Shown here: in pieces, positions 1-56,104 of the stretch
Position numbering within the stretch: the stretch's first letter is position 1
Layout of the letters: every line of letters begins with the position of its first letter
Notes under the pieces: generated by a model
Databases searched by the model: none
Told to the model about the DNA's origin: nothing
Seen by the model: only the letters and a program-made list of their open reading frames with translations
Program-made: the position numbers and the translations under genes
Virus record (IMG/VR): IMGVR_UViG_3300007770_001284
Location: 62,001 to 126,000 of that record
Length of the DNA: 64,000 nucleotides
Reading direction: 5' to 3' (one strand)

Positions 1-2
1 TC

Positions 3-638
3 TTAATCGACGCATCGACGATCAGGCTGGCACAGACTATGTTAAGCACCACACTGGATGGAGATGGCGTTGCTGATTTTATTTATCCATACGGTCATGG
101 CCAGTATTCTTTAAGGGTATGGGCAAAGCACCAGCTTGAGACCTCAAGCGCCCCCGACGGCCACCGCGAAGCTGAAGAAGCAGCTTCAGCGGAGTTGGCA
201 TATGCAATCATTGAATTGATTGCAAAAGACAATATTGATTTGTTATATTATCAAAATACAATATTAGACGTAGTGAGTGTTCCCTGGTCATCGGCCTTTG
301 GTCACATATTTTTTGCGAAGACAGAAGCTTATTTGAGGGCGTACGGAGAGAATGAGAATTTTGTTTCGTGGGGTGCTGAAGATATAGAGAGGTTTACTAG
401 GTTTTCGAAGCTTGGGTTTAAAGTTATGAGATTTCCTTATCCTGTTGTACATCTCGAGCATCCTCGAGGTCTTGATTCTGGAAAGTCTAATCCGCATTTT
501 CAATCGAATGAAGACTTGTGGGTTTCGCTACAAGACAAAGATGTTGATTGGATCAAGAATTATTATGAAAATTGTGAATATTACAAAGCTCGAAAATGGA
601 AGAGCCTGGACATGGGTGAATTATTTAAATGGCAATAG
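3..638 (+). CDS. Galactosyltransferase-like protein (Glyco_transf_7C), 5'-truncated by the window edge
   Basis: The frame is open from position 3. It has the GT7C signature GENENFVSWGAEDIERF...HLEHPRG and is a paralog of 1459-2424. Confidence 0.75.
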   Translation, partial: LIDASTIRLAQTMLSTTLDGDGVADFIYPYGHGQYSLRVWAKHQLETSSAPDGHREAEEAASAELAYAIIELIAKDNIDLLYYQNTILDVVSVPWSSAFGHIFFAKTEAYLRAYGENENFVSWGAEDIERFTRFSKLGFKVMRFPYPVVHLEHPRGLDSGKSNPHFQSNEDLWVSLQDKDVDWIKNYYENCEYYKARKWKSLDMGELFKWQ

Positions 639-649
639 GTGAAAATTAG

Positions 650-1450
650 ATGTTTTTTTATTCTGAATTAGGAAAAAATGGAAGGATTGGAAATCAAATG
701 TTCCAATATGCCACGCTTTTTGCGTTGGGCAAAAATAGACAAATTGACATTGGTATACCTGCCGCTGCAGTTGAGGTGTTTAAGAATACTACAAAGCCGC
801 TTAGTATTGTTGAGGCCTTCCCCAATTTGTCCGCGAAAAAAATAGACGACATTGAGGCTAAAGGGCAATATCAAGAAGAGAGCTTTTTATTTTCACCAAA
901 CCTGTTTTTGTTAATGGACAATTGTGATATTCATGGTTACTTCCAGTCTCCCCTTTACTTCTCTAAATTCCAGGAGGAGTTGAGAGAAGAGTTTCAATTT
1001 AGCAGAGATATAGATTCTGTTGCTCAAGGAAAAATAGATGATATTCGATCTTCTGATTCTCTTGTATGTGCCGTACATTTCAGGCGCTCCGATTATCTAG
1101 AGTTCCCAAATTTTCACACTAATCTAGAAGCAGAATACTACAACACGGCAATCTCGATTATGCTAAATAAATTTCCTGACATTAAATTTGTAGCGTTTTC
1201 AGATGATGCTGAGTGGCTTCAAGAGACTTTGCCCCCAGAGATTTTGGCTTCCCCAGGTGAAAACCAATTCGAAGATATGTGTATGATGACTAAATGTGAC
1301 GCTCACGTAATCGCTAATTCTTCGTTTAGCTGGTGGGGGGCTTGGTTATCAACAAGTACTAATCTTGTTATCGCGCCCCAGCGCTGGTTTGGTCCTGAGG
1401 GGCCGAAAGACTGGAGTACAATTTACCCACCGGGATGGGGCTTGCTGTAG
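650..1450 (+). CDS. Alpha-1,2-fucosyltransferase (GT11)
   Basis: GT11 motifs GRIGNQMFQYA, GYFQS, HFRRSDY, FSDD and IANSSFSWWGAWL. Confidence 0.9.
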   Translation: MFFYSELGKNGRIGNQMFQYATLFALGKNRQIDIGIPAAAVEVFKNTTKPLSIVEAFPNLSAKKIDDIEAKGQYQEESFLFSPNLFLLMDNCDIHGYFQSPLYFSKFQEELREEFQFSRDIDSVAQGKIDDIRSSDSLVCAVHFRRSDYLEFPNFHTNLEAEYYNTAISIMLNKFPDIKFVAFSDDAEWLQETLPPEILASPGENQFEDMCMMTKCDAHVIANSSFSWWGAWLSTSTNLVIAPQRWFGPEGPKDWSTIYPPGWGLL

Positions 1451-1458
1451 GAGAAATA

Positions 1459-2424
1459 ATGTCTTGGTTTCCAGATGATATGAAAAATGCTGAGTGGGGT
1501 AACGTAGAGCTCGATACAGAGAGTACGTTATACAAATTGCTGTACCGTCCTGATGAGAAAAAACTCGACTTGAGCGATCACACATTTATTATTCCATATG
1601 CAACAGATTCTTATGTAAGATTATGGAATCTTGTAACCAGCGTTTTATACCTGCGAATTCATACATCTGCCAATATACTGATTTTCGCAGCAGAAGACCC
1701 AACTCTCAATATAGAACAAAATTTAGTTGCTGGGTTACAAGGCTTGTACACACCGAATATTACAAATGAATTTCTCCAAAAATTTATTGAAAGAGTAAAA
1801 ATAATAAGTGCTACTCGTTCGACTGATCAACCGTTCCATCGTACACGCTATTTGAATGAAATGTTGGCAGTCGTAGATACACCGTATGTCGTAAATTTCG
1901 ATGCAGACATATTGCTTCCATTGGGAACAATGGCAGTTTCTGCATTGGCACTTAGAGATGAAAATGCTGACTTTGTTTATCCGTATGGTCATGGTAAGAA
2001 CCAGCTTCGTCTTTTTATTGAAGATGACATGTCATCTGATAGAAAGATTGTAGACGCTATTATCCATTCTGATTTTGGTGGTATATTAAACGACCGCGGT
2101 CTTAGGTGGGGCGCAGCCTACGGCCAGGCGATATTTGCGAATACAGAGAAGTACAAACAAGCTGGCGGAGAAAATGAGGAATTTATTTCGTGGGGTGCCG
2201 AAGATGTTGAACGGTTTGTAAGGTTTATGAAGCTAGAGTATAATGTTTTAAGGCTACCATCTATCGTTTATCACTTAGAGCACCCACGAGGTCCTGATTC
2301 TGGTGTGACAAATCCAGCATTTCGACACAATGAACAGCTGTGGGAAACGCTTCAAAAAATGAGCAAAGACGAATTGATTGAATATTACAGCAAGTGTGGC
2401 TACCTAAAGAATCGCGGTTGGTAA
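1459..2424 (+). CDS. Galactosyltransferase-like glycosyltransferase (GT-A, GT7C C-terminus)
   Basis: DAD motif (VNFDADILL) and GGENEEFISWGAEDVER. Start moved to ATG 1459 after an AGGAG SD. Confidence 0.8.
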   Translation: MSWFPDDMKNAEWGNVELDTESTLYKLLYRPDEKKLDLSDHTFIIPYATDSYVRLWNLVTSVLYLRIHTSANILIFAAEDPTLNIEQNLVAGLQGLYTPNITNEFLQKFIERVKIISATRSTDQPFHRTRYLNEMLAVVDTPYVVNFDADILLPLGTMAVSALALRDENADFVYPYGHGKNQLRLFIEDDMSSDRKIVDAIIHSDFGGILNDRGLRWGAAYGQAIFANTEKYKQAGGENEEFISWGAEDVERFVRFMKLEYNVLRLPSIVYHLEHPRGPDSGVTNPAFRHNEQLWETLQKMSKDELIEYYSKCGYLKNRGW

Positions 2425-2428
2425 TAAA

Positions 2429-3826
2429 ATGAGTTTTGCTGATTATTTCAAGGAAGTGTTTTATAAAAGGTTGTTTCAACCCCAATTGCCAGCAACGAGA
2501 CCTCGCAATAGAGCAGATTCTTTGTTAAAGGTATTCGAAATTCTGGACGAAAGAAGTAAGAATGGCCAAGATTTTTTTCGCATTGTAGAAACGGGTACTG
2601 CTAGAGCAGACCATGGCCATTTGTGCTTTGGCGGTGACGGATGCTGTACTTACATTTTTGATAAGTTTGTGAATCATTATGATGGTGAAGTATTATCCGT
2701 TGATATCAATGAAAAAAATTGTCGGTATTCCACCTCTATTACTTCACAGAAAACAGTATTATACCATCAAGACTCCGTGGAGATGCTTTGGTCAATGCCA
2801 GAAGCCGACAAGGTGGACCTTCTTTATTTGGACACCATTGATTTTGATCCTGAAAATCCGTATCCTTCTATGTCTCAATGTATGAAAGAGCTTTGTGCTG
2901 CTATGAAAAATTTAAGACCTGAGTCCATAGTCATTATCGATTCTCATGATCCGCTCTTTACGGGAGGAAAGATGTGCAAGAGCTTGTACGTCAAGAACTT
3001 TATGAGTGATATAAAAGCAGATCTACTTTTTGAAGATTATCAAATTGGGTGGATTTTCGAAAGTGACGACACCAATATAGACGAAAAAGATACCAGTACG
3101 AATAAAAACGTCGATATGTCTGTAATGACTGAGACTCGTCATGCCGCGGCTCAAGAATACGAATGGGCTGCGACAGTTGACTGGGTAGGACATGCTCTTC
3201 CTACTTTGAATCATTGGGTCGAGGAGAGGAATGATACAGAATATTGGTGCGGTGAATCGGGTGAAATGGCCAACCTAAATCAATTTTTTCTTAATGATGA
3301 AGATGTTTGGTTAAAATTTGCAAAAGAAATTCAGGATAAGACTTTGTTGGAAATTGGGGGGTCTTGTTTTGGAACAGTGGCTAGATGGAGCTTTATAAAG
3401 ACTCGTATACATATTGAGCCGTTGTTACCGAAGATTAATCCTTTCCTTGAGAAAGCGCTCCAAGGCCGCGACTCCTGGTACAAGGATGTAATCGAGTATC
3501 CAGTTTGTGCCGAAGAATTTATATCTGAGCTCGAAGATAGAATTGATGGGTGCATTTATACTAGAAATTGTCTTGATCACACCAAGAATCCCTGGGCAAT
3601 TTTAGACAATATTGGTCGGTATGCTAAAAAGGGTTGTTATTTGTTATTGTGGACTGAAATAGCACACCTCGATGGTGGGGATGTTGGTCATATAGACATA
3701 ACTCATAATCCTGAAGATTTAGAGAGCTATATCAAGAATTTGGGCTTTGAAATTATAAGACCAGTCGTTGTTGGGAATTTAGAGCATACACTAGAATATG
3801 GTTGTTTTGCCATAAAGAATGAGTAA
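2429..3826 (+). CDS. Two-domain class I SAM-dependent methyltransferase fusion
   Basis: N-domain IVETGT...SVDI...DLLYLD...IIDS; acidic linker; C-domain LLEIGGS...IEPL...NCLDH...P. Confidence 0.7.
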   Translation: MSFADYFKEVFYKRLFQPQLPATRPRNRADSLLKVFEILDERSKNGQDFFRIVETGTARADHGHLCFGGDGCCTYIFDKFVNHYDGEVLSVDINEKNCRYSTSITSQKTVLYHQDSVEMLWSMPEADKVDLLYLDTIDFDPENPYPSMSQCMKELCAAMKNLRPESIVIIDSHDPLFTGGKMCKSLYVKNFMSDIKADLLFEDYQIGWIFESDDTNIDEKDTSTNKNVDMSVMTETRHAAAQEYEWAATVDWVGHALPTLNHWVEERNDTEYWCGESGEMANLNQFFLNDEDVWLKFAKEIQDKTLLEIGGSCFGTVARWSFIKTRIHIEPLLPKINPFLEKALQGRDSWYKDVIEYPVCAEEFISELEDRIDGCIYTRNCLDHTKNPWAILDNIGRYAKKGCYLLLWTEIAHLDGGDVGHIDITHNPEDLESYIKNLGFEIIRPVVVGNLEHTLEYGCFAIKNE

Positions 3827-4604
3827 TATGGAATTTGAAACGATATATTGCAATTACGCTGATGAAAATTATGAGCATCATCAAAGAAACATGGTGAACC
3901 ATGTGATTGAAAACGGTATATTCGATTACGTTTGTGACTACACAAGGGAATGGCTTGTGACGACAGAATTTTATAAAGAAAATAAGTCCATTTTAGATAG
4001 AGAGCGCTTAGCTGGGTATATGCTATGGAAACCGTTTATTATTTTAGACGTTTTAGAGAAAGCAAAAGAAAACCAGATTGTTGTTTATATGGACGTGGGT
4101 GATGTGCCCAACAAGGGTATTTCGGATTATGTAAAAAAATGGATGAAAAATAACGATTTATTAATTACGTTGGGCGGAAACAAAAATCGTCAAATGACGA
4201 AAAGAGACACCTTTATTTTAATGGATTGTGAAGAAGAAAAATATTATAACGCTATTCAAGTCGAGGCGGGTTTCTTTGCAGCAAAGAAAACTACAAGTAA
4301 TATTGCTTTTATTCGGGAGTGGCTAGAATATTGTAAGGATGAGAGAATACTAACAGATATTCCAAACCAGCTCGGCGTCTCTAATTTTGATGAGTTTATA
4401 GATCATCGTCATGATCAAAGTATTTTGTCACTTTTACAAGTAAAATATAATATCCAAACATCTTCTAAGCATAGAGGATACGTGGGGTTTAACGTTAATA
4501 TGCACAAAAAGGGTCACAAGTACGCAAATGGCGGGTCTAGTATTGGGACATCTGGGATATTTTCCCATTGGAATAATCGTGGGGAGTGGAGAGCAGAAGA
4601 ATGA
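3819..4604 (+). CDS. Putative glycosyltransferase (WKP...YMD...HRHDQS family)
   Basis: GYMLWKPFII, VYMDVGD and DHRHDQSILSLL, in a glycan cluster. Confidence 0.55.
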   Translation: MSNMEFETIYCNYADENYEHHQRNMVNHVIENGIFDYVCDYTREWLVTTEFYKENKSILDRERLAGYMLWKPFIILDVLEKAKENQIVVYMDVGDVPNKGISDYVKKWMKNNDLLITLGGNKNRQMTKRDTFILMDCEEEKYYNAIQVEAGFFAAKKTTSNIAFIREWLEYCKDERILTDIPNQLGVSNFDEFIDHRHDQSILSLLQVKYNIQTSSKHRGYVGFNVNMHKKGHKYANGGSSIGTSGIFSHWNNRGEWRAEE

Positions 4605-4927
4605 GTAGTGATAAAAAGACATATGTGTTTGATTTGGATAATACGCTATGCGACACGAAGCGAAACGCTGATGATACAGCGTGGGGGTATTTAGACTCTA
4701 AGCCACATCTCGACAGAATAGAGAGAGTAAATGAGCTGTTTCAACAAGGTCACACAATCATTATAGAGACAGCTCGTGGCTCGTTTTCCAAGGTTAATTG
4801 GTATATCCAGACCCATGAGCAATTAACGTCGTGGGGCCTGAAATTCCATCAGTTAAGAACGGGCGTAAAATTTGCTGCCGACTATTTTATTGATGACAAG
4901 GCAATAAATTCAGAGGAGTTTTTTTAG
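4601..4927 (+). CDS. Small HAD-family capsule-type phosphatase (EcbF-like)
   Basis: FDLDNT, TARG and K..ADYFIDDKA; ATGA overlap with the upstream gene at 4601. Confidence 0.75.
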   Translation: MSSDKKTYVFDLDNTLCDTKRNADDTAWGYLDSKPHLDRIERVNELFQQGHTIIIETARGSFSKVNWYIQTHEQLTSWGLKFHQLRTGVKFAADYFIDDKAINSEEFF

Positions 4928-6264
4928 TGGCCGCCGAGATAGCAGCTTCGAATAGGCACATACCACTTTTCAAAAAGACCTATTATGGTTTAGTTCCTTT
5001 TGAGAGACGATACGGAAGCGCTTTCGATAAGACTTACAAGTTCTTATGCGAGTCTGAGTCATGGACTTTGCAGAGACTTCTAGATTATCAACACGTCCAA
5101 TTTAAGCTACTCATTTCTCATGTGTATAAGAACGTTCCATATTATAGGCGTTTAATGAATGAAAGGGGTCTTACTATTGATTCGTTTCGAACCATCGAAG
5201 ACCTTCATTTGCTGCCGTATCTTACTAAAGAAATTATTAGAGACAATATTCAAGATCTAATCGCAACAAACATGAATGATCGCCCGGTCGAGTTTAGAAC
5301 AAGCGGCTCAACAGGAAAGAAGTTAGTATTCTATGGCACTGACGATCTTTATAAAAAAGAAGCCGCGTTTATTTTAAGGGCTTTTCGCTCCCACGGTGCG
5401 ACGATGTACGATAAGCCCAGTGTGTGGATACGAAGGTACGTTCCTAAGAACAATAACTCTCCGCTTTGGTATTACGATCATGAGCTCAGGCGCCTATACA
5501 TGTCTGCTTACAATATCAATTCTGATACCATCAAGGATTATGTCACAGAGATTAATCGAAAGAAATATCACACTTTAGTTGGCTACCCGTCAAGCATCTA
5601 TATTTTTGCATGTATGTGCGAAGAATCAGGCTTATATCCGGCCGGTATAGAGGCAATCCATGTAGCATCAGAAAAAATGCTGGATAAATGGAAAGACAAA
5701 ATCGAAGAAGTTTTTGGGATAATTCCAAAGGCTCATTATGGTATGCAGGAAAAAGTTGTATTGCACCATCAGACGTCGCATTCGACTGCTTATATCGAAA
5801 ATTTTGAGTATGGCATTACTGAATTTGATAATACCGAAGGTCAAAATGTTATTGTAGGTACAGGATTTTTAAATTACTATATGCCTTTTATTCGATATCG
5901 CACAAGTGATGTGGGGATACTGAACCCGGATGGGGCCCCCTATCGTATGTTAGATATCGATGGAAGATGTGACGATATTCTTGTTTCAAAAAATGGTGCC
6001 CGCCTTCCTGGTGTTAATTTTTATACGATGATGTACAAGATTGACGGTGTAAAAATGTTCCAGATTATTCAGAAGACCAGGGAAACAATCGAATTTCTTT
6101 TAGTGCCCAATGAACACTACACAGAGGAAACGATATTAGAAATAACAACAGGCTTAAAACAGAGATTAGGAAATTTAGATATTAGTGTTCAAGTAGTCGA
6201 GAAAATCAAAAGAAGCCACGATACTGGCAAAATCAGGTGCATATTCAATGAGTGTGAAAGCTAA
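4927..6264 (+). CDS. CapK / phenylacetate-CoA ligase-like adenylate-forming enzyme
   Basis: VPYYR, LPYLTKE, TSGSTG P-loop, YPS, MPFIRYRTSD, GRCDD and GKIR. Confidence 0.85.
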   Translation: MAAEIAASNRHIPLFKKTYYGLVPFERRYGSAFDKTYKFLCESESWTLQRLLDYQHVQFKLLISHVYKNVPYYRRLMNERGLTIDSFRTIEDLHLLPYLTKEIIRDNIQDLIATNMNDRPVEFRTSGSTGKKLVFYGTDDLYKKEAAFILRAFRSHGATMYDKPSVWIRRYVPKNNNSPLWYYDHELRRLYMSAYNINSDTIKDYVTEINRKKYHTLVGYPSSIYIFACMCEESGLYPAGIEAIHVASEKMLDKWKDKIEEVFGIIPKAHYGMQEKVVLHHQTSHSTAYIENFEYGITEFDNTEGQNVIVGTGFLNYYMPFIRYRTSDVGILNPDGAPYRMLDIDGRCDDILVSKNGARLPGVNFYTMMYKIDGVKMFQIIQKTRETIEFLLVPNEHYTEETILEITTGLKQRLGNLDISVQVVEKIKRSHDTGKIRCIFNECES

Positions 6265-7306
6265 AAAGCGGGTGATGTCTTTAGAGCCCTACAACGTCGG
6301 AAAACGATTTGAATTACCCGTTGGGTGGGAATGCTTTGATTGGAATGAATCTGCATTTCCTCCAACTCCTCATGTTCGTAATGCTATTGAAGAGTTCATG
6401 AAAAGTGGCAAGATGGAAAAATATCCGGATATTTCAAATAAGCGTTTAAAGGAAGAACTTTCTCTTTATGTGAATTTACCCACAAGTCATATTGAGGCCT
6501 ATAATGGGTCTGACGCTGCACTAAGGGATATTTTTGCGGTTTTCGTAGATGAAGAAACACGGGTCCTATCCTATCAACCCTCATACACTCAGGTGGATAC
6601 CTTTATTGTTCTCAATACAGAGCATTATACGCAGGTACAAATCGAAGACCCTTTAGGCAATCATGTTTATGACTTTAGTCACTGTGCAAATTACGACGTG
6701 GTGTATCTTGTAACTCCCAACAATCCCACTGGAAAGACGATTTCACTTTCCGTGATTACTTCATTAGTGGAAAAATATAGAGAGACTTTGTTTGTAGTAG
6801 ACGAAGCGTATTACGAATATTCAGGTATTTCATGTTCAGACTTGGTTTTAGAGCATGAAAATCTTTTAGTAATAAGAACGTTTTCTAAGGCATTCGGCTT
6901 AGCAGCCCTTAGGTTAGGGTATGTGCTTGGACATCCTTCTTCTTTGTTCTTGTTAAGAAAAATTAAAAATGGGAAGAGCGTTAATGCACTTTCTCAAGTG
7001 GCTGGTATAGCTTGTTTGGAGGACTTATCATATCTCCATGCTCGTGTTAGTGAAATAAAGGAATCAAAAAGAGCGTTCATCGAAGGAGTAAACAGGTTTC
7101 CAGGTTTTTATGCCTTAGAAAGTGAAGCGAATTTTGTTTTACTTCGAGTACCAGATGTTTCTTCTTTTATTGACACCATGACACAAAACAAGATTGTAGT
7201 TCGTGATCGCAGCTATATAACAAATTTAGAAAATTGTGTTAGAATCACTATTGGATCATTGGTTCATGTGGATAACATTTTGAATATAATAGAGCGGAGC
7301 ACATAG
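6248..7306 (+). CDS. PLP-dependent class I/II enzyme, HisC/CobD family
   Basis: NGSD, PNNPTG, VDEAYYEY and RTFSKAFGLAALRLGY (PLP lysine). Confidence 0.85.
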   Translation: MSVKAKKRVMSLEPYNVGKRFELPVGWECFDWNESAFPPTPHVRNAIEEFMKSGKMEKYPDISNKRLKEELSLYVNLPTSHIEAYNGSDAALRDIFAVFVDEETRVLSYQPSYTQVDTFIVLNTEHYTQVQIEDPLGNHVYDFSHCANYDVVYLVTPNNPTGKTISLSVITSLVEKYRETLFVVDEAYYEYSGISCSDLVLEHENLLVIRTFSKAFGLAALRLGYVLGHPSSLFLLRKIKNGKSVNALSQVAGIACLEDLSYLHARVSEIKESKRAFIEGVNRFPGFYALESEANFVLLRVPDVSSFIDTMTQNKIVVRDRSYITNLENCVRITIGSLVHVDNILNIIERST

Positions 7307-8544: not shown

Positions 8545-9396
8545 GTGCACAGTATTATATTGACCATCCATAATGGCGCGAGACGTATGGCTGATGGCGA
8601 AATATTACTGGAAAGAGTGCTAGATGGTCTCATCAATAATTCGGTGGGCGATTATGAATTATTATGTATGCTGGATGGATGTACCGACGGTTCAGAATTA
8701 ATTGTTGAAAAATATATTGATTCGAGTAAGCACTTAGACATTCGTGCAATTATCACACCAGACATATATGAGCTTCGAACAAATAACGTTGGATTTAAAG
8801 CGTCGAAAGGTGAGTATGTCATAGTCGTTCAGGATGATCAAATTGTGACAGAGCCCGGATGGAACCGGCGGATGCAAGAACCATTTGACGTATTTGATGA
8901 TGTCTTCGCAGTAACTGCCAGAACAGCGCACAATTGGATTTTGAATCCTAATAGCAAACATTTTGGAACAGATACGATTTTAGACAATTGTTGGTGTGAT
9001 ATTTTTCTAGCGACAGATCATGCTTATGGGTATCCTATACAGATGACAAATTATAAAAGAGATGAATTTGCTGTGAGAGGGACAGTTAACCGAGGACCCT
9101 TGATGATCAATCATAAAGATTTAAGAAGTATGAATTATCTCGATGATGAGTTCGCTCCTTGTGATATGGACGATCATGACTTAATGTTTAGAGCGTACAA
9201 ACAACTTGGGAAAATTTGCGGCGGTTATCGAATTGGTGTTGAGTCAAAACCAGCCTGGAGTGGGTCGACAGTCAGCGGATCTGTACCGCCATGGGCGCTA
9301 CGATCTCATCACAAAAATTGTAGAATTTTTTATAGTAGAAACAAAGATGTCCTGACTGAACGTCGTATTGTGGAAAATCGTAGAATTACTCATTAA
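8545..9396 (+). CDS. Glycosyltransferase family 2
   Basis: ILTIHN, DGCTDGS, NVGF..SKGEYVIVVQDD and DDHDL. Confidence 0.8.
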   Translation: MHSIILTIHNGARRMADGEILLERVLDGLINNSVGDYELLCMLDGCTDGSELIVEKYIDSSKHLDIRAIITPDIYELRTNNVGFKASKGEYVIVVQDDQIVTEPGWNRRMQEPFDVFDDVFAVTARTAHNWILNPNSKHFGTDTILDNCWCDIFLATDHAYGYPIQMTNYKRDEFAVRGTVNRGPLMINHKDLRSMNYLDDEFAPCDMDDHDLMFRAYKQLGKICGGYRIGVESKPAWSGSTVSGSVPPWALRSHHKNCRIFYSRNKDVLTERRIVENRRITH

Positions 9397-48898: not shown

Positions 48899-51800
48899 AT
48901 GGCACGTGAATCAAGGACATCTTTAAATAAATCTGATTTTTTGGTCATAAGATCGAAAACTGACGATTCTATCTTAAAGATAGTTTCTCCCCAGCACTTC
49001 CAGATCGGGTTCGATGATAAGGAATTTCATCGGATTCTCGCTGTCCATGGTAATGTTGAGGCCACAACGGTGTACGCTCCATCATTGTCTGGTTCTTTAA
49101 CACGCCTTGCTGATGGTACTACGTATCTACGCGAAGGGAACAATGTAACGATTACAACTGGTTCAGACGGCGCTGTTACGATTGCCGCGGGTACAGGCGC
49201 GCTGGTCGGGACGCTGTCGGGAGTAGAGGCGGACGGAATTCAAGACTTTACTTATGACGGAAGCGGAAACGCATCAGTAAAGGTAGACTTATATGACCGC
49301 GGAGGAATTACATTCTCTTCAAGTGGTCTGGGTCTGAATCCAAATGATGTAGACTCAGAATTAGCTGTGACCCCCGCCTCCGGAGACTTGCTGTTCATCT
49401 ACGATCTTGATGACCCCACTGCACGCAATGTAAAAAAGGTTTCCGTCTCCAACTTAATGGCGGCAGGCGCCGGTGGCACTTTGGCGAATGCCATTACTTT
49501 TGGAGACGGAATTTATGATTCTGCTTCTGGCGCAAGCTCATATAATAATACTGCCGCGGCAACAATCGCAGTAGATCTTGCGACAAATTCTGGTTTAGAA
49601 TTTAGTTCAAATAAATTAAAAGCCGATCTGGATGGCTCAACGTTAAGTGTAAATTCGTCTGGACTAAGCGTTGCGTCAGTACCGAATGCTTTAACACATG
49701 GAACGGGAATATCATCATTTAGTTATGACGGCGGCACAGCTAGCGTGGCAGTCGGTATCGATACATCTACGGTTCCTCTTTTGGCAAGTAGCAATACATG
49801 GTCTGGAACAAATACATTTGGTACACTGTTGGGGAAGCATGATGAGGTGTCTTCTGGCGTTCCATATCTTGTGGGCGGTAGCAACGTTACAATTTCTTAT
49901 GATACCCCGACTTCTGGCCAGATAACAATCGCTGCTTCGCTTGGTGCCGGAGGAGATCTTACCGCCGGGTCAGGTATTGGCACTTTTACGTATAATGGCA
50001 CAGGTGCAGCAACAGTTGGATTAGACGCAACATCGTTGTCTTCTGCTGGTACAAGGTCTTCATCTCTATTTGTGTCTGACGGCGGGACTACAATAACAAA
50101 ATCTACTGTGGGTACGTTGGTTGACCTGGTTGACAGAACCGTGCTGATGGCCGCGGCTTCGAACGGCGGGATCAACCTGAACTTTCAAGGTGCTGAGCTA
50201 CCAACTTTATTTTCTATTGATTTAGATGGCAGTACCCTTTCGATCGGAAATAACGGGATATCTGTTGCAAATTTGCCGTATGCAATTTCTCAAGGAACAG
50301 GCATTGATACATTTTCGTTTGACGGCTCTTCTACCCAGACAGTTGCAATCGACACTGCAGTGGTTCCTCGAAAGGGTGTCGACAATACGTGGACAGGGAA
50401 AAATACGTTTGGTATATCAACAACAGCGGGCTTAACTGGCTCTCTACAAGAAGTGTCTTCTGGTGTACCATATCTTGCCTGCGGTACAGGTGTAAGCATC
50501 GTTACGTCATCGAACGGACAGATAGTCGTTTCAACAGATGGCACAGAAATTACTGGTGTTACCGCTGGCCAGGGATTGACAGGTGGCGGTGCTTCCGGCG
50601 ATGTAACCCTGGCGGTTGATCTTGCATCAACCGCAGGCCTAGAATTTAGCTCTGATAAATTAAGGGTCAAGCTTGACGGCAGCACAATCGATATGGGTTC
50701 TTCTGGTATAAGCGTGGCGAATGTTCCAAATTCTTTGGCTCAAGGAACAGGGATATCAACGTTCACTTATGATGGTGGGACTTCTGGTATTACTGTTGGT
50801 ATTGATAATTCTGTCGTCGCGACATTAACTGGGTCTCAATTTAGCGGACCTGTTGTCTTTAATGCTGGTTTGTCTGGGTCGTTGACGCGGCTTCCTGATG
50901 GTACGTCATATCTCCGGCAGGGTGATAACGTCACGATAACGACGGGGTCTTCTGGTGAGATTACAATTAGCGCAATCGCTGGTGGTGGTGGCGTCGCGGA
51001 TGGTAATGCACAATATCTTGTTTTGGCCGCGACTAGTTCTCTCGCGCAAGAGAGAGTTATTACAATGGGGACAGGCCTTGCATCTAGCGACGACGGTGCA
51101 GGTAATGCGTACACTCTACGAGTGAAAGATAGCGAGTTTGCTGCATTAACTGGCTCGATTTTTTCCGGTGATGTTGTTGCGCAAGCAGGACTTTCCGGGT
51201 CCTTACAAGCGCTGTCTGATGGCACGTCATACCTCCGCGAGGGCTCGAATATTGCAATAGCAAGTTCCTCAGCGGGATATGTCACAGTGTCTTCTACTGA
51301 TACAACATACACAGCTGGTTCCGGCCTGGATCTTTCGGGTACCGCATTTAGTGTCGATCTTAAGAGCGGATCTGGCTTAGTAATTGACTCTGCCGAGCTT
51401 TCAATTGATGATTCTGTTTTAGCGACGATTACTGGGTCTACTTTTACTGGTACCGTGACCGCCCCAGCTCTTTCGGGTTCGCTTACAAGACTACAAGACG
51501 GGACTTCCTATCTACGACCAGGTAATGCTAATGTTATCATAACCTCTGCCTCAGCTGGGTATATTTCAATATCATCTACTGACACAGACACAACATACAC
51601 TGCTGGCGATGGTCTAGATCTTTCAGGCACCGAATTCAGTGTCGATCTTAAGAGCAACTCTGGGTTGGTGATTGATTCAACAGAGCTCTCTATAGACGAT
51701 TCGATTATTGCAACGATCACTGGATCGACCTTCACAGGCACGGTTACTGCTCCAGCTCTTTCTGGTTCACTCACCAAACTACAAGATGGGACATCTTACC

Positions 51801-53737
51801 TGATCGCAGGAAGTAACGTGACCATTACTACTGGCTCCTCTGGAGCTGTGACAGTAGCTGCGTCCGGTGGAGAAATATCAGTTGTTTCCGGTTCTTCTAG
51901 CGTTTCAAGCATCAGCACTCTAAACTTATCTAAGCTTGGAGTTATAAGCGATCTGGGCGGTGGCGTCGTCGCAGTCACTGGGTCTATAGGAGATGCTGAA
52001 GACGGTTCATATTCTGATGGGTTATTCACCGATTTCAGTACTGTAACACCAGTTGGGACAGCGGTGGATAGGTTTAACGAGGTCTTGAAGGGGCTTGCAC
52101 CCTCCGCCGCCCCAGGTCTAGACGATATGAACTGTTCAGACTCTGGTACTTCGGCTGTCCTTTCCTTCGGATCATCGCAGTCAATTTCCGGTTATACAAA
52201 TGCACGACCTTCCACGTTGACGCCCACTGACAATCTTTCTGATATCGATATTAATGGAACGTTTAATTCAACTGCCGCAAGTAATGACTTACGGCGCGCT
52301 TGTTTCGGCGGCTCGACAGTGATCAACGGAACGCTGAACGCCGACGTGTCAGCAGATGGTGTAAATTACGCCGCTTATTCATTCGGCAACGGTAATCAGG
52401 GAACTTTGAAACTTTTTGTAAATGATAATTCCACTGCAATACACTCTGTAGATTTAAGTTCATTCGGGTCTGGGAATTCTTTGAACGGAAACGGGTCTGG
52501 GTTTAACCTTTCTGCAACCACGCCAGGCCATTTTAGCGATAGCAGCAATTTCGAAACTTTCCAACACCGGCAAGGTACATACACAATCACCGCCGCTGAT
52601 CAGCAGAGCGGGTGGAACTACGCGAGGGTGGTGCACACAATAGCAGGCGCAGATATAACATGCAACTATGTGGAGTGGGTGAACGATCCCGATTCCAATG
52701 CATTGTCTTCCGATAATTCTGCCATGGATTCGCTTTCCATGACAGGAACTAAAAATCTTTCGGGAGTGAAATATAACACTGGCGGAACCGCTGAATATAG
52801 GATCCGCGTCTTGAATGCGTATCGTAATGTATATTCTACATCTACAATATCTTTTAACGGCACAAATTGCTCAGTCTCGTCTCAAGCGTTTCCATCTATC
52901 AATCATGCAGGCGGCGAAGATGAAACGAAAATTCTGCATCTTACTGGATCAGCGACGATTACAGGCGATCCTATTTTAGATGGGTCGATTTCTGTAAGTA
53001 CTAATGTACCCGCACCGCTAAAATCGAATCTTTCCAGCGCCGGCTCACAGTCAATAAGCGGAATTTTGTTATACGATCTATCTGATACATCCACCGCCAC
53101 GTCTGAGACGTTCAGGGGTGAAAGTTATAGATTAATATCAGGTAGCTATAATACTCAAGCTAACGTTACCGCTGGAGGGAGTGCTTGGGATTCTACAACA
53201 AGCCTCGCCGGCGTTGATGGCTTGCTTTTTTATAATAGCCGACTTTACGCGCCGCCCCAAGGAGGAGATTCTGGAGATTTTAGAAACACTTCTGACGGCG
53301 GGTCAATAACAAACGGTCCAAGTAGCAATGTAAATTATAGCGGTATCACGTCAGGCACAAGAACGTTTTATAGATATTTTCAGAACACATCAGGGGGCTC
53401 AAAGACAGGTTTCGATCTTACTATCAACGGATCAGGAACTATCGCTTCTCAAGCGACTACATTGACAACGTCGAACCTTCACGTGTTGATTAAGCTTCCG
53501 ACCACAACTGCTGCCTTTGAAACTGGGTGGATGGATTTGGCAATCTCATTCGCGACGGGACAAACCTCCGACGGCGACGGCTGCTTAGATGGAAGCTTAG
53601 ACTCATCGCTCAATGCGACTAACACTGCGACCTTCGGAACACAGTCAGTAGGCAGTAATGAATATATAGTTGTGAAAATAGAGGCAGACGCTTCATCAAC
53701 TGGGTACATTTCTAGTATGAGCGTTTCGTGGAGCTAA
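48899..53737 (+). CDS. Repeat-rich fibre-like virion protein (1612 aa)
   Basis: Ser/Gly/Thr-rich, with 7 copies (2 degenerate) of LSGSLxxLxDGTSYLxxGxNVTI plus other repeats, and a unique ~600-aa C-terminus. Confidence 0.7.
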   Translation: MARESRTSLNKSDFLVIRSKTDDSILKIVSPQHFQIGFDDKEFHRILAVHGNVEATTVYAPSLSGSLTRLADGTTYLREGNNVTITTGSDGAVTIAAGTGALVGTLSGVEADGIQDFTYDGSGNASVKVDLYDRGGITFSSSGLGLNPNDVDSELAVTPASGDLLFIYDLDDPTARNVKKVSVSNLMAAGAGGTLANAITFGDGIYDSASGASSYNNTAAATIAVDLATNSGLEFSSNKLKADLDGSTLSVNSSGLSVASVPNALTHGTGISSFSYDGGTASVAVGIDTSTVPLLASSNTWSGTNTFGTLLGKHDEVSSGVPYLVGGSNVTISYDTPTSGQITIAASLGAGGDLTAGSGIGTFTYNGTGAATVGLDATSLSSAGTRSSSLFVSDGGTTITKSTVGTLVDLVDRTVLMAAASNGGINLNFQGAELPTLFSIDLDGSTLSIGNNGISVANLPYAISQGTGIDTFSFDGSSTQTVAIDTAVVPRKGVDNTWTGKNTFGISTTAGLTGSLQEVSSGVPYLACGTGVSIVTSSNGQIVVSTDGTEITGVTAGQGLTGGGASGDVTLAVDLASTAGLEFSSDKLRVKLDGSTIDMGSSGISVANVPNSLAQGTGISTFTYDGGTSGITVGIDNSVVATLTGSQFSGPVVFNAGLSGSLTRLPDGTSYLRQGDNVTITTGSSGEITISAIAGGGGVADGNAQYLVLAATSSLAQERVITMGTGLASSDDGAGNAYTLRVKDSEFAALTGSIFSGDVVAQAGLSGSLQALSDGTSYLREGSNIAIASSSAGYVTVSSTDTTYTAGSGLDLSGTAFSVDLKSGSGLVIDSAELSIDDSVLATITGSTFTGTVTAPALSGSLTRLQDGTSYLRPGNANVIITSASAGYISISSTDTDTTYTAGDGLDLSGTEFSVDLKSNSGLVIDSTELSIDDSIIATITGSTFTGTVTAPALSGSLTKLQDGTSYLIAGSNVTITTGSSGAVTVAASGGEISVVSGSSSVSSISTLNLSKLGVISDLGGGVVAVTGSIGDAEDGSYSDGLFTDFSTVTPVGTAVDRFNEVLKGLAPSAAPGLDDMNCSDSGTSAVLSFGSSQSISGYTNARPSTLTPTDNLSDIDINGTFNSTAASNDLRRACFGGSTVINGTLNADVSADGVNYAAYSFGNGNQGTLKLFVNDNSTAIHSVDLSSFGSGNSLNGNGSGFNLSATTPGHFSDSSNFETFQHRQGTYTITAADQQSGWNYARVVHTIAGADITCNYVEWVNDPDSNALSSDNSAMDSLSMTGTKNLSGVKYNTGGTAEYRIRVLNAYRNVYSTSTISFNGTNCSVSSQAFPSINHAGGEDETKILHLTGSATITGDPILDGSISVSTNVPAPLKSNLSSAGSQSISGILLYDLSDTSTATSETFRGESYRLISGSYNTQANVTAGGSAWDSTTSLAGVDGLLFYNSRLYAPPQGGDSGDFRNTSDGGSITNGPSSNVNYSGITSGTRTFYRYFQNTSGGSKTGFDLTINGSGTIASQATTLTTSNLHVLIKLPTTTAAFETGWMDLAISFATGQTSDGDGCLDGSLDSSLNATNTATFGTQSVGSNEYIVVKIEADASSTGYISSMSVSWS
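51293..51800 (+). repeat. Tandem intragenic duplication, 288-bp period
   Basis: gtgtcgatcttaagagc at 51351 and 51639; the peptide TYTAGxGLDLSGTxFSVDLKS...DGTSYL occurs twice. Confidence 0.85.
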
Positions 53738-53740
53738 CCT

Positions 53741-56104
53741 ATGGCGTATGATGCAAAAACTGAGCGCTTGATTTCGCTTAAGAAATTAGCGGGTAAAGCG
53801 CAGACATCAAACGATAAGGGTCTTTCTAACGAGGGACTGCCGTCAGGTATAACTACAACTTCTGAAAATATATTCGGAGAATCGGTCACTACCAGCCCAT
53901 CCAACACCGCGCTATATACAATCACGGGACAGGTGGAATACCTCAGATTTCCCGCAACGTTTATTGCCGGTAGCGATACATCGGATGGTCGACACGGATT
54001 TGAATTAAAGCTTCCATCTGATTATGAATCCAATTCATCGAATTCAAAGGCGGGTACGTACCCGTTCCAGAATGATCAAGTCATTAATATAACGTCTGGA
54101 TCGTTACAACTTATACCTCCATCTTTTGCGTCATCATACGAGGCAAAGCCGTATTACGGTGGTAATTCGTCCAAGGGATCAGGTACACTAATTCCGCTAC
54201 TGGACGCTCGAGATTGGTATCTAGATTATTTTAACGGAGTGTTCTTCCAGCAGGACCCATCTGGAACTGGAGACCAGGCGGATAATCCTGACTTTATTGA
54301 GGGCTATCTGTATATTGGTGATATGCTGGACACTGTTGTCGCGTCAGCTGGCGGTGCAGGAGATGGTGATCCTGCTGCACAATATCTTGTTTTGGCCGCC
54401 ACCGCATCGCTATCGAATGAGCGTGTGTTTACAGCAGGAACAGGAATAAAGACTACTGATTCTGGTGCCGGTGCTGCCTATACGATCGCAGTTAGAGATT
54501 CAATTGTCGCAACTTTAACTGGTTCAACATTTTCAGGAACAGTTTCTGCTCCCGCATTGTCCGGTTCATTAACGAATCTGCAGGATGGTACTAGCTACTT
54601 GATTGCTGGAAGTAATACGACAATAGTGACAGGTTCTTCAGGAGCCATTACAATTTCATCGACTGGAGGTATTGATGGTTCTGGAGCAGCAAACAGAATT
54701 GCGACCTGGTCAGATTCAGATACGCTAACATCTGATGCTGACTTTACGTGGAACGGGTCTCTTTTAGATGTCCAGGGTGACGTAAATCTTAACGGAACTG
54801 TGGTGGTAAACCAGAGCGGAGTCGATAAAAACTTTAGGGTAGAAACCCAAAATAAAAGTAGCGCCTTGCAGGTAGACGGTGAAACAGACCAAGTACTTCT
54901 ATTTTCCGGAAGTCTTTCTGATGCTTCTGGTCACGGCTCGTCAGCAGCAGACCCTGACCCAAGAACGTTCACTGACACTAATTTCTTCGTGTCTGGATCT
55001 ATCGATTCTCGAAATACTTCAAGGAGAGGTACTTCTGTTTTCGGTGGTGATGTTGTAGTATCCGGAACGTTATCTGTCAACAGGGGTCAGGCGGGTGTTG
55101 GTAGCATGTTTACCGTTACATCAGATGGTAAAGTTGGCATTGGGTCTGATACTCCTTCTTATAAGCTTTCTGTTGGCGGAAATATGGACGTGGGAGAGTA
55201 CATCTACCACAAAAATGATGCCAACACTTTTATTCGGTTTCAGCCAGATGATATAAACATTCAAGCTGGTGGTGTCGATCTTATAAAAATGACAGAATCA
55301 GGTGCCAATACACAGATACTGATTTTATCTGGTGGCGGCACCTCAGATCCCAACCCCGCTAATTTTGGTGATACTAGTTTCTTTGTATCTGGAAGTATAG
55401 GGAGTATTGGGACATCAACAGGGGGTTCATCTGTTTTCGGTGGGGATGTACTTGCTTCTGGGTCTGTTGTAGCGTTGGCCGGCCTATCCGCGTCTTTACA
55501 ACAACTTAGCGATGGTACATCATATCTTCGGGAAGGGCCGAACGTTACTATAACATCAGCCTCTGATGGTTCAATAACTATTTCTTCGACAGGAGGCAGC
55601 GGTTCTCCCGGCGGAAGCAATACGCAGATTCAATTTAACGATAGTAACACTTTTGGTGGCGACAGCACATTCACGTTTAATAAGGTAACGAATACTTTAA
55701 GCGTGCCCGCATTGTCGGGTTCATTGACGCGGCTCGTTGACGGTACGTCGTATCTTCGGTCTGGTACTGGTATCTCTATAACCACCGGATCATCTGGTTA
55801 TGTTCAAGTTAGTAATACTGGGGTATCCGAAAGACAGAGACAGAGCTATTTTCTAGCACAATCGTATTCTGCCGGGGTGAATGTTCCAGTGTCATCGACA
55901 AATTTTGCGACGGTATCTTATGACATTGGTTTGATCGACGTTTTATTGAATGGACAGTTATTGCATTCTGGCACAGCAGCGCAGGTAACAGCAGATCCTG
56001 TGGAACGAGATTACTATGTGACTGGTGCATCATCATTAAAATTTGCGTTTGATATTGAAATTGATGATGTTCTCGATGTAATGGTATACAAGGTAGTAAG
56101 CTAG
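53741..56104 (+). CDS. Fibre-like virion protein (787 aa) sharing repeats with the 48899 protein
   Basis: Three DGTSYL repeats, two FFVSGSI...SVFGGDV repeats, GKVGIG and a C-terminal LNGQLL domain. Confidence 0.7.
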   Translation: MAYDAKTERLISLKKLAGKAQTSNDKGLSNEGLPSGITTTSENIFGESVTTSPSNTALYTITGQVEYLRFPATFIAGSDTSDGRHGFELKLPSDYESNSSNSKAGTYPFQNDQVINITSGSLQLIPPSFASSYEAKPYYGGNSSKGSGTLIPLLDARDWYLDYFNGVFFQQDPSGTGDQADNPDFIEGYLYIGDMLDTVVASAGGAGDGDPAAQYLVLAATASLSNERVFTAGTGIKTTDSGAGAAYTIAVRDSIVATLTGSTFSGTVSAPALSGSLTNLQDGTSYLIAGSNTTIVTGSSGAITISSTGGIDGSGAANRIATWSDSDTLTSDADFTWNGSLLDVQGDVNLNGTVVVNQSGVDKNFRVETQNKSSALQVDGETDQVLLFSGSLSDASGHGSSAADPDPRTFTDTNFFVSGSIDSRNTSRRGTSVFGGDVVVSGTLSVNRGQAGVGSMFTVTSDGKVGIGSDTPSYKLSVGGNMDVGEYIYHKNDANTFIRFQPDDINIQAGGVDLIKMTESGANTQILILSGGGTSDPNPANFGDTSFFVSGSIGSIGTSTGGSSVFGGDVLASGSVVALAGLSASLQQLSDGTSYLREGPNVTITSASDGSITISSTGGSGSPGGSNTQIQFNDSNTFGGDSTFTFNKVTNTLSVPALSGSLTRLVDGTSYLRSGTGISITTGSSGYVQVSNTGVSERQRQSYFLAQSYSAGVNVPVSSTNFATVSYDIGLIDVLLNGQLLHSGTAAQVTADPVERDYYVTGASSLKFAFDIEIDDVLDVMVYKVVS

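Follow-up and report, generated by a model that had tools for sequence, protein, structure and literature searches.

A swappable island of soluble glycan genes beside the baseplate genes of an uncultured marine jumbo phage

Why would a tailed phage carry more than 27 kb of sugar-building genes without any visible means of moving the product across a membrane? The locus lies on a 254.7-kb IMG/VR phage contig (IMGVR_UViG_3300007770_001284); the window analysed here is the 64,000-nucleotide stretch from base 62001 to base 126000. A first-pass annotation made from the sequence alone had described a glycan cassette running through a nuclease and two GT4-like glycosyltransferases into a late sigma factor and the baseplate/fibre module, and had proposed that the glycan is built in the cytoplasm and attached to virion proteins. 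Our analysis confirms the gene arrangement that it saw, with three corrections given below. Its interpretation is supported only in part: a conserved GT4 core with an exchangeable cassette is borne out, whereas virion proteins as the acceptor remain an inference, tentatively favoured over the host envelope.

Organization of the island

The window contains 50 co-oriented genes on the + strand (Table 1). Of genes g01–g30, 22 have glycan-related family hits from Pfam or NCBIfam, one (g07) carries a CapK_C mark on the contig's gene table, and one (g19) is FkbM-like through the Pfam marks of its homologues, giving 24 of 30. Of the 32 junctions from g01 to g33, 20 overlap or touch and 7 have gaps of 15 nt or less. 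The cassette does not start at base 1, as the first-pass annotation had it; g01 is the C-terminal 199 aa of a 380-aa transferase, and two more GT2 genes precede it, so that the true cassette comprises 33 genes and 27.1 kb, starting 3.2 kb before the window. Its GC content is 40%, against 48–49% in the flanking fibre genes. The join to the downstream genes is not chimeric: five assemblies from different samples cover window positions 16106–37287 with 0–29 mismatches, and there is no GC break at 24 kb.

Family hits support GDP-L-fucose synthesis (GMD plus an Fcl-like enzyme); ADP-L,D-heptose synthesis, with transketolase supplying sedoheptulose-7-P, HldE domains I and II, a HAD phosphatase, and HldD; an NDP-6-deoxyhexose route; and a uronic-acid route with an amidoligase, the amidation itself being read by analogy. 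At least six GT-A transferases (including a GT11 fucosyltransferase), two sulfotransferases, and an FkbM-type methyltransferase are also encoded. The fucose, heptose, sulfate, and methyl chemistry of the earlier proposal is thus backed by family hits, although methylation rests on g19 and not on the weak hit of g04.

Kyte-Doolittle scans found no 19-residue hydrophobic segment (at or above 1.6) in g01–g33 or in the eight ORFs of the 18.8 kb upstream of the window, which include the five genes in the 15 kb upstream of the cassette; g34 is the only clear membrane anchor. No polytopic priming phosphoglycosyltransferase (WbaP/WecA type) was detected by Pfam search, and no flippase, ABC exporter, polymerase, or ligase was found in the 83 kb examined, which leaves about 170 kb of the genome outside the search. 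Among 1274 ORFs of 90 related loci there is no polytopic protein with eight or more segments, the only multi-span protein being a 284-aa protein with four to six segments beside gp25. The clustered, co-oriented NDP-sugar and glycosyltransferase genes typical of a cell-surface polysaccharide locus are present, but its membrane components were not found in the region read.

The gene called a late sigma factor in the first-pass annotation (g35) has no Pfam or PHROG hit and no PDB hit by phmmer or profile search, and so lacks a sigma region 2 or region 4 recognizable by sequence. Alignment motifs and an AF2 model (pLDDT 80.6) suggest a relationship; sigma factors are 23 of the top 24 PDB fold hits (Foldseek), but these are weak matches, with E-values of 0.045 or worse and TM of 0.23–0.34. 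It is best described as sigma-like, without the qualifier "late."

The gp25 assignment rests on a Pfam hit of 1.4e-5 (below the cut-off) and PHROG 43 at 1.1e-6; the gp6-like protein matches PHROG 219 and, by tblastn, the annotated baseplate wedge of Flavobacterium phage immuto (7e-67; 30% identity over 99% of the length).

Table 1. Features of the glycan island and adjoining genes (positions in the 64,000-nucleotide window)
Position	Strand	Feature	Basis and remarks
1..2424	+	g01 (C-terminal part of a GT7C-like GT-A transferase that starts upstream of the window), g02 GT11 fucosyltransferase, g03 GT2/GT7C-like transferase	Pfam
2429..4604	+	g04 (weak methyltransferase hit), g05 (no assignment)	g04 hits below the Pfam cut-off; g05 no hit
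4586..8535	+	g06 HAD-IIIA "capsule biosynthesis phosphatase"-like, g07 adenylate-forming CapK/PaaK-like ligase, g08 HisC-like PLP aminotransferase, g09 NDP-sugar 6-dehydrogenase	Family hits; together a probable uronic-acid amidation block, by analogy
8545..12394	+	g10 GT2, g11 and g13 Sulfotransfer_2 carbohydrate sulfotransferases, g12 and g14 (no assignment)	Family hits
12384..18439	+	Heptose block: g15 HldE domain II adenylyltransferase, g16 cupin, g17 SDR, g18 Zn-ADH, g19 FkbM-like methyltransferase, g20/g21 split transketolase, g22 HldE domain I kinase, g23 HldD epimerase	Family hits; block kept in relatives L012/L013
18411..22848	+	g24 (weak 2OG-Fe oxygenase hit), g25 GDP-L-fucose synthase-like, g26 sugar-1-P nucleotidyltransferase, g27 beta-phosphoglucomutase-like HAD, g28 (no assignment), g29 dTDP-glucose 4,6-dehydratase-like	Family hits
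22833..23897	+	g30 GDP-mannose 4,6-dehydratase	Pfam 2.7e-129; with g25 the semi-conserved proximal end of the cassette; kept at 64-90% identity in most relatives
23939..24811	+	g31 PD-(D/E)XK (Cas4/RecB-like) exonuclease	7.5e-20; linked to the GT4 pair also in immuto and Mel-JY01, absent next to the pair in the L101 clade
24875..26128	+	g32 GT4 (GT-B, retaining type)	E-x7-E kept; in most of the more distant relatives the best-conserved protein of the block; more than 4000 homologue clusters in metagenomes
26106..27290	+	g33, second GT4	E-x7-D/E kept; overlaps g32 by 23 nt; fused to g32 in relative L023
27277..27603	+	g34, small protein with an N-terminal membrane anchor	Travels with g35, not with the GT4 pair
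27575..28306	+	g35, divergent sigma-70-like protein	Alignment motifs, AF2 plus Foldseek; no sequence-level hit
28313..31455	+	g36, g37, g38, conserved proteins without assigned function preceding the baseplate wedge genes	Synteny with immuto genes 153-155
31500..35405	+	g39 gp25-like and g40 gp6-like baseplate wedge proteins, plus g41	Pfam, PHROG, tblastn
35405..48842	+	g42 and g43 (Laminin_G_3 / ConA-like lectin domains), g44 (2398 aa): presumed baseplate-distal or fibre proteins	Hypervariable among relatives; fibre role inferred
48899..59233	+	g45, g46, g47, Ser/Thr/Gly-rich repeat proteins	Paralogous to the 2148-aa and 1811-aa giants just upstream of the cassette; g47 lies beyond 1..56104

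Conservation and exchange among relatives

If the GT4 pair is a core and the upstream genes a "serotype" locus, the order GT4-GT4-sigma-baseplate should persist in related genomes while the cassette varies, a test set by the first-pass annotation. This is what was found: the order holds in 26 of 26 distinct relative lineages, in which the GT4 proteins are 45–100% identical, including the L101 clade of relatives, which lacks both cassette and nuclease. In the relative L023 the two GT4 enzymes are fused into one 807-aa protein. The cassette, in contrast, is exchanged even in a near-identical relative (L097), which has g35 and g36 at 100% and g40 at 91% identity but six unrelated genes in place of the distal cassette. 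Another relative (L099) uses transaldolase, SIS, and GHMP-kinase genes instead of the transketolase route, and the cassettes of other relatives hold NeuB, GLF, DegT, carbamoyltransferase, and other sulfotransferase families.

The adjacency to the baseplate is specific to this clade. In the cultured, distant relatives immuto and Microcystis phage Mel-JY01, the orthologous nuclease-GT4-GT4 trio and its cassette lie away from the structural genes, following lysis genes in immuto and among replication genes in Mel-JY01, so the adjacency could reflect a recombination-prone spot. The nuclease is 25% identical, and the two GT4s about 30% identical, to their immuto counterparts, and the sigma-like to baseplate gene order is the same in immuto. 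In these two phages the cassette, about 11 kb, lies downstream of the pair and encodes soluble glycan proteins (GT2, WecE-type aminotransferases, a methyltransferase, a PglB-like acetyltransferase, and an epimerase).

In two relatives (L019 and L024), a terminator-like hairpin followed by a −10-like box separates the nuclease from the GT4 pair, which would place the pair in the unit with the baseplate genes; this motif evidence is weak, and a consensus promoter/terminator scan showed no excess over shuffled sequences.

Possible targets of the glycan

The analysis establishes the glycan island of an uncultured marine jumbo myovirus, with two retaining-type GT4 glycosyltransferases as an invariant core that, in this clade, heads the gene run into the sigma-like gene and the baseplate, and, just upstream, a low-GC, recombination-swapped cassette of soluble enzymes whose pathways are assigned by family hits. 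That the two GT4s work as a unit is suggested by their gene overlap, their fusion in one relative, and their presence in a clade with no cassette. The remainder, including the acceptor and the order of reactions, is inferred. In the view that we tentatively favour, all steps would run in the cytoplasm of the infected cell; the GT4 pair would place the first sugars directly on phage structural proteins, most plausibly the Ser/Thr/Gly-rich fibre proteins whose genes bracket the island, and the cassette enzymes would then extend this primer into a lineage-specific, fucosylated, heptosylated, methylated, and sulfated glycan coat on the virion. The absence of membrane segments, the bracketing by paralogous giant repeat proteins, and the synteny, fusion, and swapping described above agree with this view, as do the nearest neighbours of the GT4s. 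It is based on sequence and predicted structure, with no acceptor identified and no experimental data. The lack of membrane segments is not diagnostic, since ordinary O-antigen and capsule transferases are also soluble or peripheral, and it does not separate protein glycosylation from extension of host lipid-linked intermediates.

An alternative, on balance unlikely but only a little less likely than the first, is remodelling of the host envelope. The phage enzymes might extend or rebuild a host undecaprenyl-phosphate-linked glycan (O-antigen, capsule, or S-layer/protein O-glycan precursor) at the inner face of the membrane, relying on the host's priming transferase, flippase, and ligase, and so change the infected cell surface, for example to exclude other phages or to stop progeny sticking to debris. 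The gene content is that of a cell-surface polysaccharide locus, soluble transferases are normal for such pathways, the unit lies outside the structural module in immuto and Mel-JY01, and the low GC of the island suggests uptake from cellular donors. Phage "LPS-like" gene clusters without export genes are usually read this way, and serotype change is listed as an option for the moraphages (PMC12619734). However, nothing phage-encoded in the region examined links the product to the membrane, and a host flippase and ligase would have to accept many unrelated phage-made glycans. The GT4 pair is also more conserved than the baseplate proteins in most of the more distant lineages, persists without any cassette, and is syntenic with baseplate genes in 26 of 26 lineages; its conservation and persistence fit a conserved phage-side acceptor better than diverse host glycans.

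It is less likely that the pair and the cassette serve another target or separate targets, such as a non-structural phage or host cytoplasmic protein, a glycolipid, or a small-molecule glycoside or storage sugar, with the cassette an unrelated metabolic island beside the pair. Fold neighbours of g33 include small-molecule GT4s (BshA, GlgM, sucrose-phosphate and trehalose synthases, LmbT, and SenB), the pair exists without a cassette in the L101 clade, and the nuclease, together with the terminator-like signals in L019 and L024, separates the two. Pair and cassette nevertheless stay together despite rearrangement, the cassette being upstream of the pair in the marine clade and downstream in immuto and Mel-JY01, and at least six further transferases plus sulfo- and methyltransferases imply an oligo- or polysaccharide rather than a simple glycoside.

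DNA hypermodification to evade restriction, with the nuclease degrading unmodified host DNA, is very unlikely, although the trio lies next to replication genes in Mel-JY01, g33 passes the Pfam cut-off for "GT4-conflict" (29.6 bits against 26), and phage clusters put heptose and Kdo on 5hmC using a GT-B, a HAD/kinase, and a cytidylyltransferase (bioRxiv 10.1101/2023.12.21.572611): Pfam, PHROG, and NCBIfam searches of the 83 kb examined found no C5-methyltransferase, 5mYOX/TET, thymidylate-synthase-like (dCMP/dUMP) hydroxymethylase, hydroxylase, or 5-hydroxy-dCMP synthase, one of which lies beside the transferase in known systems; T4 beta-glucosyltransferase is absent from the top 50 PDB fold hits of the g33 model (pLDDT 88.8); LC-UV-MS/MS of immuto virion DNA showed canonical dA, dC, and dT with fdPreQ1 replacing dG, and no glycosylated nucleoside was reported (PMC10516641); and a GT11 fucosyltransferase, sulfotransferases, and at least eight transferases are far more than any known DNA glycan needs.

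Comparison with other glycosylation systems

The chloroviruses (PBCV-1/NY-2A) encode soluble cytoplasmic transferases, and PBCV-1 encodes a GDP-mannose 4,6-dehydratase and GDP-fucose synthase pair, as here. Chlorovirus NY-2A B736L is the top PDB hit for g32 by sequence (E 6e-6) and for g33 by fold (16% identity), but the similarity is weak and barely better than to cellular GT4s; BshA, GlgM, HepE, sucrose-phosphate synthase, SdgB, and GtfA all score within about two orders of magnitude in the fold search. The chlorovirus acceptor is the major capsid protein, with N-linked glycans, the host here is a bacterium and the virus a tailed phage, and this cassette is much larger and includes sulfation and heptose. 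Mimivirus and other Megavirinae have clade-specific clusters that make bacterial-type sugars and decorate surface fibrils. The present cassette likewise differs between close relatives and lies among presumed fibre genes, and three of the four best named BFVD matches of g33 are giant-virus transferases (TM 0.71–0.74); glycosylation of the fibres is inferred only.

Tailed phages can glycosylate their particles, as shown by mycobacteriophage virion O-glycosylation (Freeman et al. 2023, as summarised in PMC12619734), in which phage-encoded transferases modify virion proteins in the cytoplasm. That system has two or so transferases beside the capsid and tail-tube genes, uses host sugars, and has no large cassette, whereas the neighbours here are baseplate and fibre genes; a tblastn search with g32 of 50,697 phage records found no mycobacteriophage. 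The "moraphages" (Perez-Hernandez et al. 2025, PMC12619734) are aquatic jumbo phages whose core genome includes four putative glycosyltransferase groups, a sigma factor, gp25, and gp6. A Rhodothermus phage is a neighbour in their capsid tree, and RM378 is a GT4 hit here. The resemblance is at the level of such features only, since the MCP, TerL, and PolB genes by which that lineage is clustered lie outside the window; that paper leaves the transferase function open and does not describe the cassette, its swapping, or the synteny.

The GtfA-GtfB and SdgA/B O-GlcNAc transferases of streptococci and staphylococci are paired GT-B/GT4 enzymes that act in the cytoplasm on Ser-rich fibrous surface proteins, after which further transferases extend the glycan. 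SdgB and GtfA appear among the fold hits, no better than many other GT4s. GtfB is a non-catalytic partner, whereas both phage families keep the invariant Glu and the E/D eight residues later. Phage DNA sugar-hypermodification clusters (T4 alpha/beta-GT; 5mYOX- or ThyS-linked transferases) also combine GT-B enzymes with sugar-activation genes, including a heptose route, but differ in the points given above.

Virus-encoded glycosylation is thus already known; what differs here is a large, exchangeable soluble cassette set beside a conserved GT4 pair and baseplate genes in a phage. It is possible, though doubtful on present evidence, that a cosmopolitan clade of aquatic jumbo phages, its spread attested by the GT4 homologue clusters in metagenomes, gives its virions, probably the giant Ser/Thr/Gly-rich fibres, a strain-specific glycan coat made wholly in the cytoplasm by phage enzymes, primed by the GT4 pair and extended by a recombining 10–27-kb "serotype" cassette. 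If so, this would be the first bacterial-virus counterpart of the giant-virus glycocalyx and a new route of cytoplasmic protein glycosylation.

Gene content and genomic context

The region analysed lies within JGI contig Ga0105015_1000011, also filed as IMGVR_UViG_3300007770_001284 (254,743 bp; bases 62001-126000), and the same region occurs in at least 24 other contigs. Five IMG/VR assemblies from different samples cover the junction between cassette, nuclease, GT4 pair and baseplate with 0-29 mismatches, and GC content is flat across 22-26 kb; the junction is therefore real, and an assembly chimera near 24 kb is rejected. The observation made in the first-pass annotation, a long run of glycan genes leading into two GT4-like enzymes and the baseplate genes, is thus upheld. 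No phage in GenBank is close at the DNA level (megablast of both halves of the region against 50,697 phage records gave no match), and there are no tRNAs in the window.

All 50 main ORFs are on the + strand. Family searches assigned GT7C-like, GT11 and GT2 transferases (g01-g03 and g10), two Sulfotransfer_2 enzymes (g11 and g13), and a block comprising a HAD "capsule phosphatase", a CapK/PaaK-like ATP ligase, a HisC-like aminotransferase and an NDP-sugar dehydrogenase (g06-g09); these four genes, which sit side by side, resemble the Campylobacter capsule genes that amidate glucuronic acid. An ADP-heptose set follows, consisting of HldE domain II (g15), HldE domain I (g22) and HldD (g23), with a split transketolase (g20/g21) that could supply sedoheptulose-7-P. 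The remaining assignments are an Fcl-like GDP-fucose synthase (g25), RmlA-like, beta-phosphoglucomutase-like and RmlB-like enzymes (g26, g27 and g29), and GMD (g30, 2.7e-129). The product of g19 has no direct hit, but its homologs carry FkbM-type methyltransferase domains. The closest cellular homologs of the phage GMD among 185,579 species genomes are 56-63% identical, and almost all are from Verrucomicrobiota (Roseibacillus, Luteolibacter, Prosthecobacter, Opitutales); this single-gene evidence hints at a host or gene donor outside the Bacteroidota predicted for the "moraphage" lineage of aquatic jumbo phages.

The first gene, g01, is cut by the window edge; the contig shows that it encodes 380 aa and is preceded by GT2 genes of 260 and 640 aa and a 180-bp AT-rich gap. 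The cassette therefore comprises 33 genes and 27.1 kb, with a GC content of 40.0%, against 49.1% and 47.9% in the flanking giant genes. A Kyte-Doolittle scan found no membrane-type segment in any cassette product, and none in the proteins preceding the cassette (PhoH, proteins of 119 and 371 aa, and giants of 2148 and 1811 aa). The PhoH-like gene (PHROG 2765, 1e-93) lies 14.9 kb upstream of the cassette start, before the giant fibre-like genes.

Downstream, g31 encodes a PD-(D/E)XK exonuclease, and g32 and g33 encode GT4/GT-B enzymes that both keep the E-x7-E/D signature in alignments of 13-14 homologs. The small protein g34 has an N-terminal membrane anchor. No sequence-level family hit was obtained for g35, and phmmer and profile searches of the PDB found no sigma factor; its alignment, however, shows sigma region 2-like and region 4-like motifs, and an AF2 model (pLDDT 80.6) returned sigma factors as 23 of the top 24 PDB matches, although the best E-value is only 0.045. 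We therefore describe g35 as sigma-like, and the first-pass designation of a "late" sigma factor goes beyond this evidence. The small anchored protein overlaps the start of the sigma-like gene both here and in Flavobacterium phage immuto, and may be an anti-sigma factor or a membrane-tethered regulator of the phage sigma. A role for g34 as a membrane anchor for the GT4 pair is rejected, because in immuto the same type of protein sits beside the sigma-like gene, far from the GT4 pair; it travels with the sigma-like gene and not with the transferases.

The products of g39 and g40 are gp25- and gp6-like, and those of g42 and g43 carry ConA-like lectin domains. The Ser/Thr/Gly-rich repeat proteins g45-g47 are paralogous to each other and to the two giants upstream of the cassette (five giant ORFs of 2148, 1811, 1612, 787 and 918 aa), so that the island sits inside a set of paralogous fibre-like genes. 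That they are fibres is inferred from size, composition, repeats, position and a weak BclA_C/C1q-like C-terminus in the 1811-aa protein, for which only identical copies were found in IMG/VR. Seven copies of a GSLTxLxDGTSY-type motif, within modules about 95-100 aa apart, are shared by g45 and g46; the motif was not found in the upstream giants or in related loci, so there is no shared acceptor motif.

A strong intrinsic terminator (a G6/C6 stem with a T-run) follows g47, and a 372-bp non-coding gap separates g46 from g47; these are the only long non-coding stretches in 59 kb. A scan of 18-37 kb for promoters and terminators gave counts that did not exceed those in shuffled sequence and was uninformative. 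A -10-like element, (T/G)AT(A/G)AT(T/A), recorded without statistical assessment, lies about 12-25 nt before the start codons of the first cassette gene, the nuclease, the first GT4, gp25 and g48, and stays in place upstream of g31 and g32 in diverged relatives. In two relatives (loci L019 and L024) a terminator-like hairpin precedes it between the nuclease and the GT4.

Locations of features in the window and in related loci
Feature	Location
Region covered by five independent assemblies	window 16106-37287
HAD phosphatase, ligase, aminotransferase and dehydrogenase block (g06-g09)	window 4586-8535
Heptose pathway supply genes, transketolase route	window 15653-17636
Heptose pathway supply genes in relative L099	L099:2060-4309
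GMD (g30)	window 22833-23897
Interval upstream of first cassette gene, with -10-like element	L096:15437-15616 (L096, locus with the genes upstream of the cassette)
Interval upstream of g31 (nuclease), with -10-like element	window 23898-23938
Interval upstream of g32 (first GT4), with -10-like element	window 24812-24874
Interval upstream of g39 (gp25-like), with -10-like element	window 31456-31499
Interval upstream of g48, with -10-like element	window 59234-59341
Small anchored protein overlapping the sigma-like gene (g34; and in phage immuto)	window 27277-27603; L093:7547-7840
Giant paralogous repeat proteins	L096:3555-15436; window 48899-59233
Non-coding gap between g46 and g47	window 56105-56476
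Non-coding stretch following g47, with terminator	window 59234-59341
PhoH-like gene	L096:716-2047
Fused GT4 ORF in relative L023	L023:557-2977
NDP-sugar dehydrogenase inserted between nuclease and GT4 pair (L079, L080, L083)	about 2.1-3.0 kb in L079
Protein with 4-6 predicted membrane segments (L077-L083)	just upstream of gp25

Conservation in uncultured and cultured relatives

Scans of IMG/VR with g33 and gp6 returned 84 loci. In every locus with enough upstream sequence and gp6 at 44% identity or more (56 loci and 26 distinct identity signatures), the order GT4-GT4-small anchored protein-g35-g36-g37-gp25-gp6-g41-g42 is kept. In most of the more distant relatives g32 is the best-conserved protein of the block, at 59-65% identity where gp6 is 44-52%. 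The region upstream of the nuclease, in contrast, varies: GMD and usually the Fcl-like gene are kept, and beyond them lie NDP-sugar dehydrogenases, DegT aminotransferases, PglF-type dehydratases, NeuB with a 2-epimerase, UDP-galactopyranose mutase, a carbamoyltransferase, FkbM methyltransferases and other sulfotransferase families. The pattern proposed beforehand as a test, a conserved GT4-GT4-sigma-baseplate order with a variable cassette, was therefore found.

The closest informative relative, L097, has g35/g36 at 100%, g37 at 97% and gp6 at 91% identity, yet has six unrelated genes (carbamoyltransferase, HtrL, radical SAM, methyltransferase and others) in place of the heptose and distal block; identity falls stepwise towards the cassette (g30 90%, g29 84%, g28 72%, g25 66%). 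Two close relatives feed a heptose pathway by different routes, the window using transketolase plus HldE-type enzymes and L099 using SIS isomerase, transaldolase and a GHMP kinase. One clade (L028-L032/L101, contigs up to 391 kb) has the GT4 pair, the sigma-like gene and the baseplate, but no cassette and no recognisable nuclease; a 284-aa protein beside the GT4 pair in L101 is not detectably related to the nuclease. In L023 the two GT4 genes form a single 807-aa ORF with no stop, residues 5-422 matching g32 and residues 425-807 matching g33, a fusion-type ("Rosetta stone") hint that the two proteins work together. In one sub-clade an NDP-sugar dehydrogenase gene is inserted between the nuclease and the GT4 pair. 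No polytopic membrane protein (eight or more segments) occurs in any of these loci; a 278-292-aa protein with 4-6 predicted membrane segments replaces g38 in the sub-clade with 50-52% gp6 identity.

A tblastn search identified gp6 and GT4 homologs at about 30% identity in Flavobacterium phage immuto, Microcystis phage Mel-JY01, a 484-kb uncultured phage and RM378. In immuto and Mel-JY01 the nuclease-GT4-GT4 trio is kept and is followed by about 11 kb of soluble glycan genes, but it is not next to the baseplate. In immuto it follows lysis genes, 28 kb from the sigma-like to baseplate block, whose internal order matches that of the window; in Mel-JY01, on which a literature search found no paper, it lies among replication genes. 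The link between the GT4 pair and a glycan cassette is therefore ancient and survives rearrangement, which argues for a functional link, whereas the link to the baseplate is specific to the marine clade, which weakens position as evidence for a virion target.

The clade is widespread: g32 has more than 4000 homolog clusters at E <= 1e-10, from Tara, JGI and ENA metagenomes, and the best 120 are all at least 62% identical. A 2025 paper on "moraphages" reports aquatic jumbo phages with four core glycosyltransferase groups, a sigma factor, gp25 and gp6, and leaves the transferase role open between DNA, serotype and virion (PMC12619734). Literature searches found no description of the cassette, its swapping or the synteny. 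Virion glycosylation itself is established in mycobacteriophages and giant viruses, so that the present case would not add a new category.

Possible targets of glycosylation

The junction, the family assignments of the cassette genes, and the conserved order beside an exchanged cassette are established by the sequence comparisons; the glycan acceptor, the fibre role of the giant proteins, the joint action of the GT4 pair and the regulatory role of the sigma-like protein are inferred. The first-pass interpretation, that the phage glycosylates its own virion proteins, is accordingly only partly supported. Between virion proteins and the host envelope the evidence is indirect. Glycosylation of virion (phage) proteins is tentatively preferred, at less than even likelihood, because of the position among fibre and baseplate genes, the synteny in 26 of 26 distinct lineages, the high conservation of g32, and the persistence of the pair without a cassette; in L019 and L024 the terminator-like hairpin and -10-like box place the pair at the head of the baseplate unit, and chlorovirus and giant-virus transferases are the nearest neighbours.

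Remodelling of the host envelope is somewhat less likely but remains possible: the gene content is that of surface-polysaccharide loci, soluble transferases are normal there, and immuto and Mel-JY01 place the unit elsewhere. Another target, or separate targets, is considered unlikely. Glycosylation of DNA is very unlikely, since known phage DNA-glycosylation clusters sit beside a base-activating enzyme and none is present in the 83 kb read, the g33 model (pLDDT 88.8) does not match T4 beta-glucosyltransferase in the top 50, and published LC-UV-MS/MS of immuto DNA shows canonical dA, dC and dT, with fdPreQ1 replacing dG (PMC10516641).

Implications for phage biology

The cultured relative immuto, which infects Flavobacterium sp. 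LMO8, carries the orthologous unit and makes the question of the target directly testable. If the target is the host envelope, a lytic phage that installs whole new surface glycans using only soluble enzymes would still be notable. If it is the virion, the system would reveal a membrane-free pathway that builds elaborate glycans directly on proteins, and would supply enzymes for glyco-engineering (phage sulfotransferases, fucosyl- and heptosyl-transferases, and a paired GT4 primer). A complex, sulfated and variable glycan coat on abundant marine phages would affect adsorption and host range, stickiness to mucus and marine particles, and particle stability and recognition; it would also show serotype-like diversification on the virus side of the arms race.
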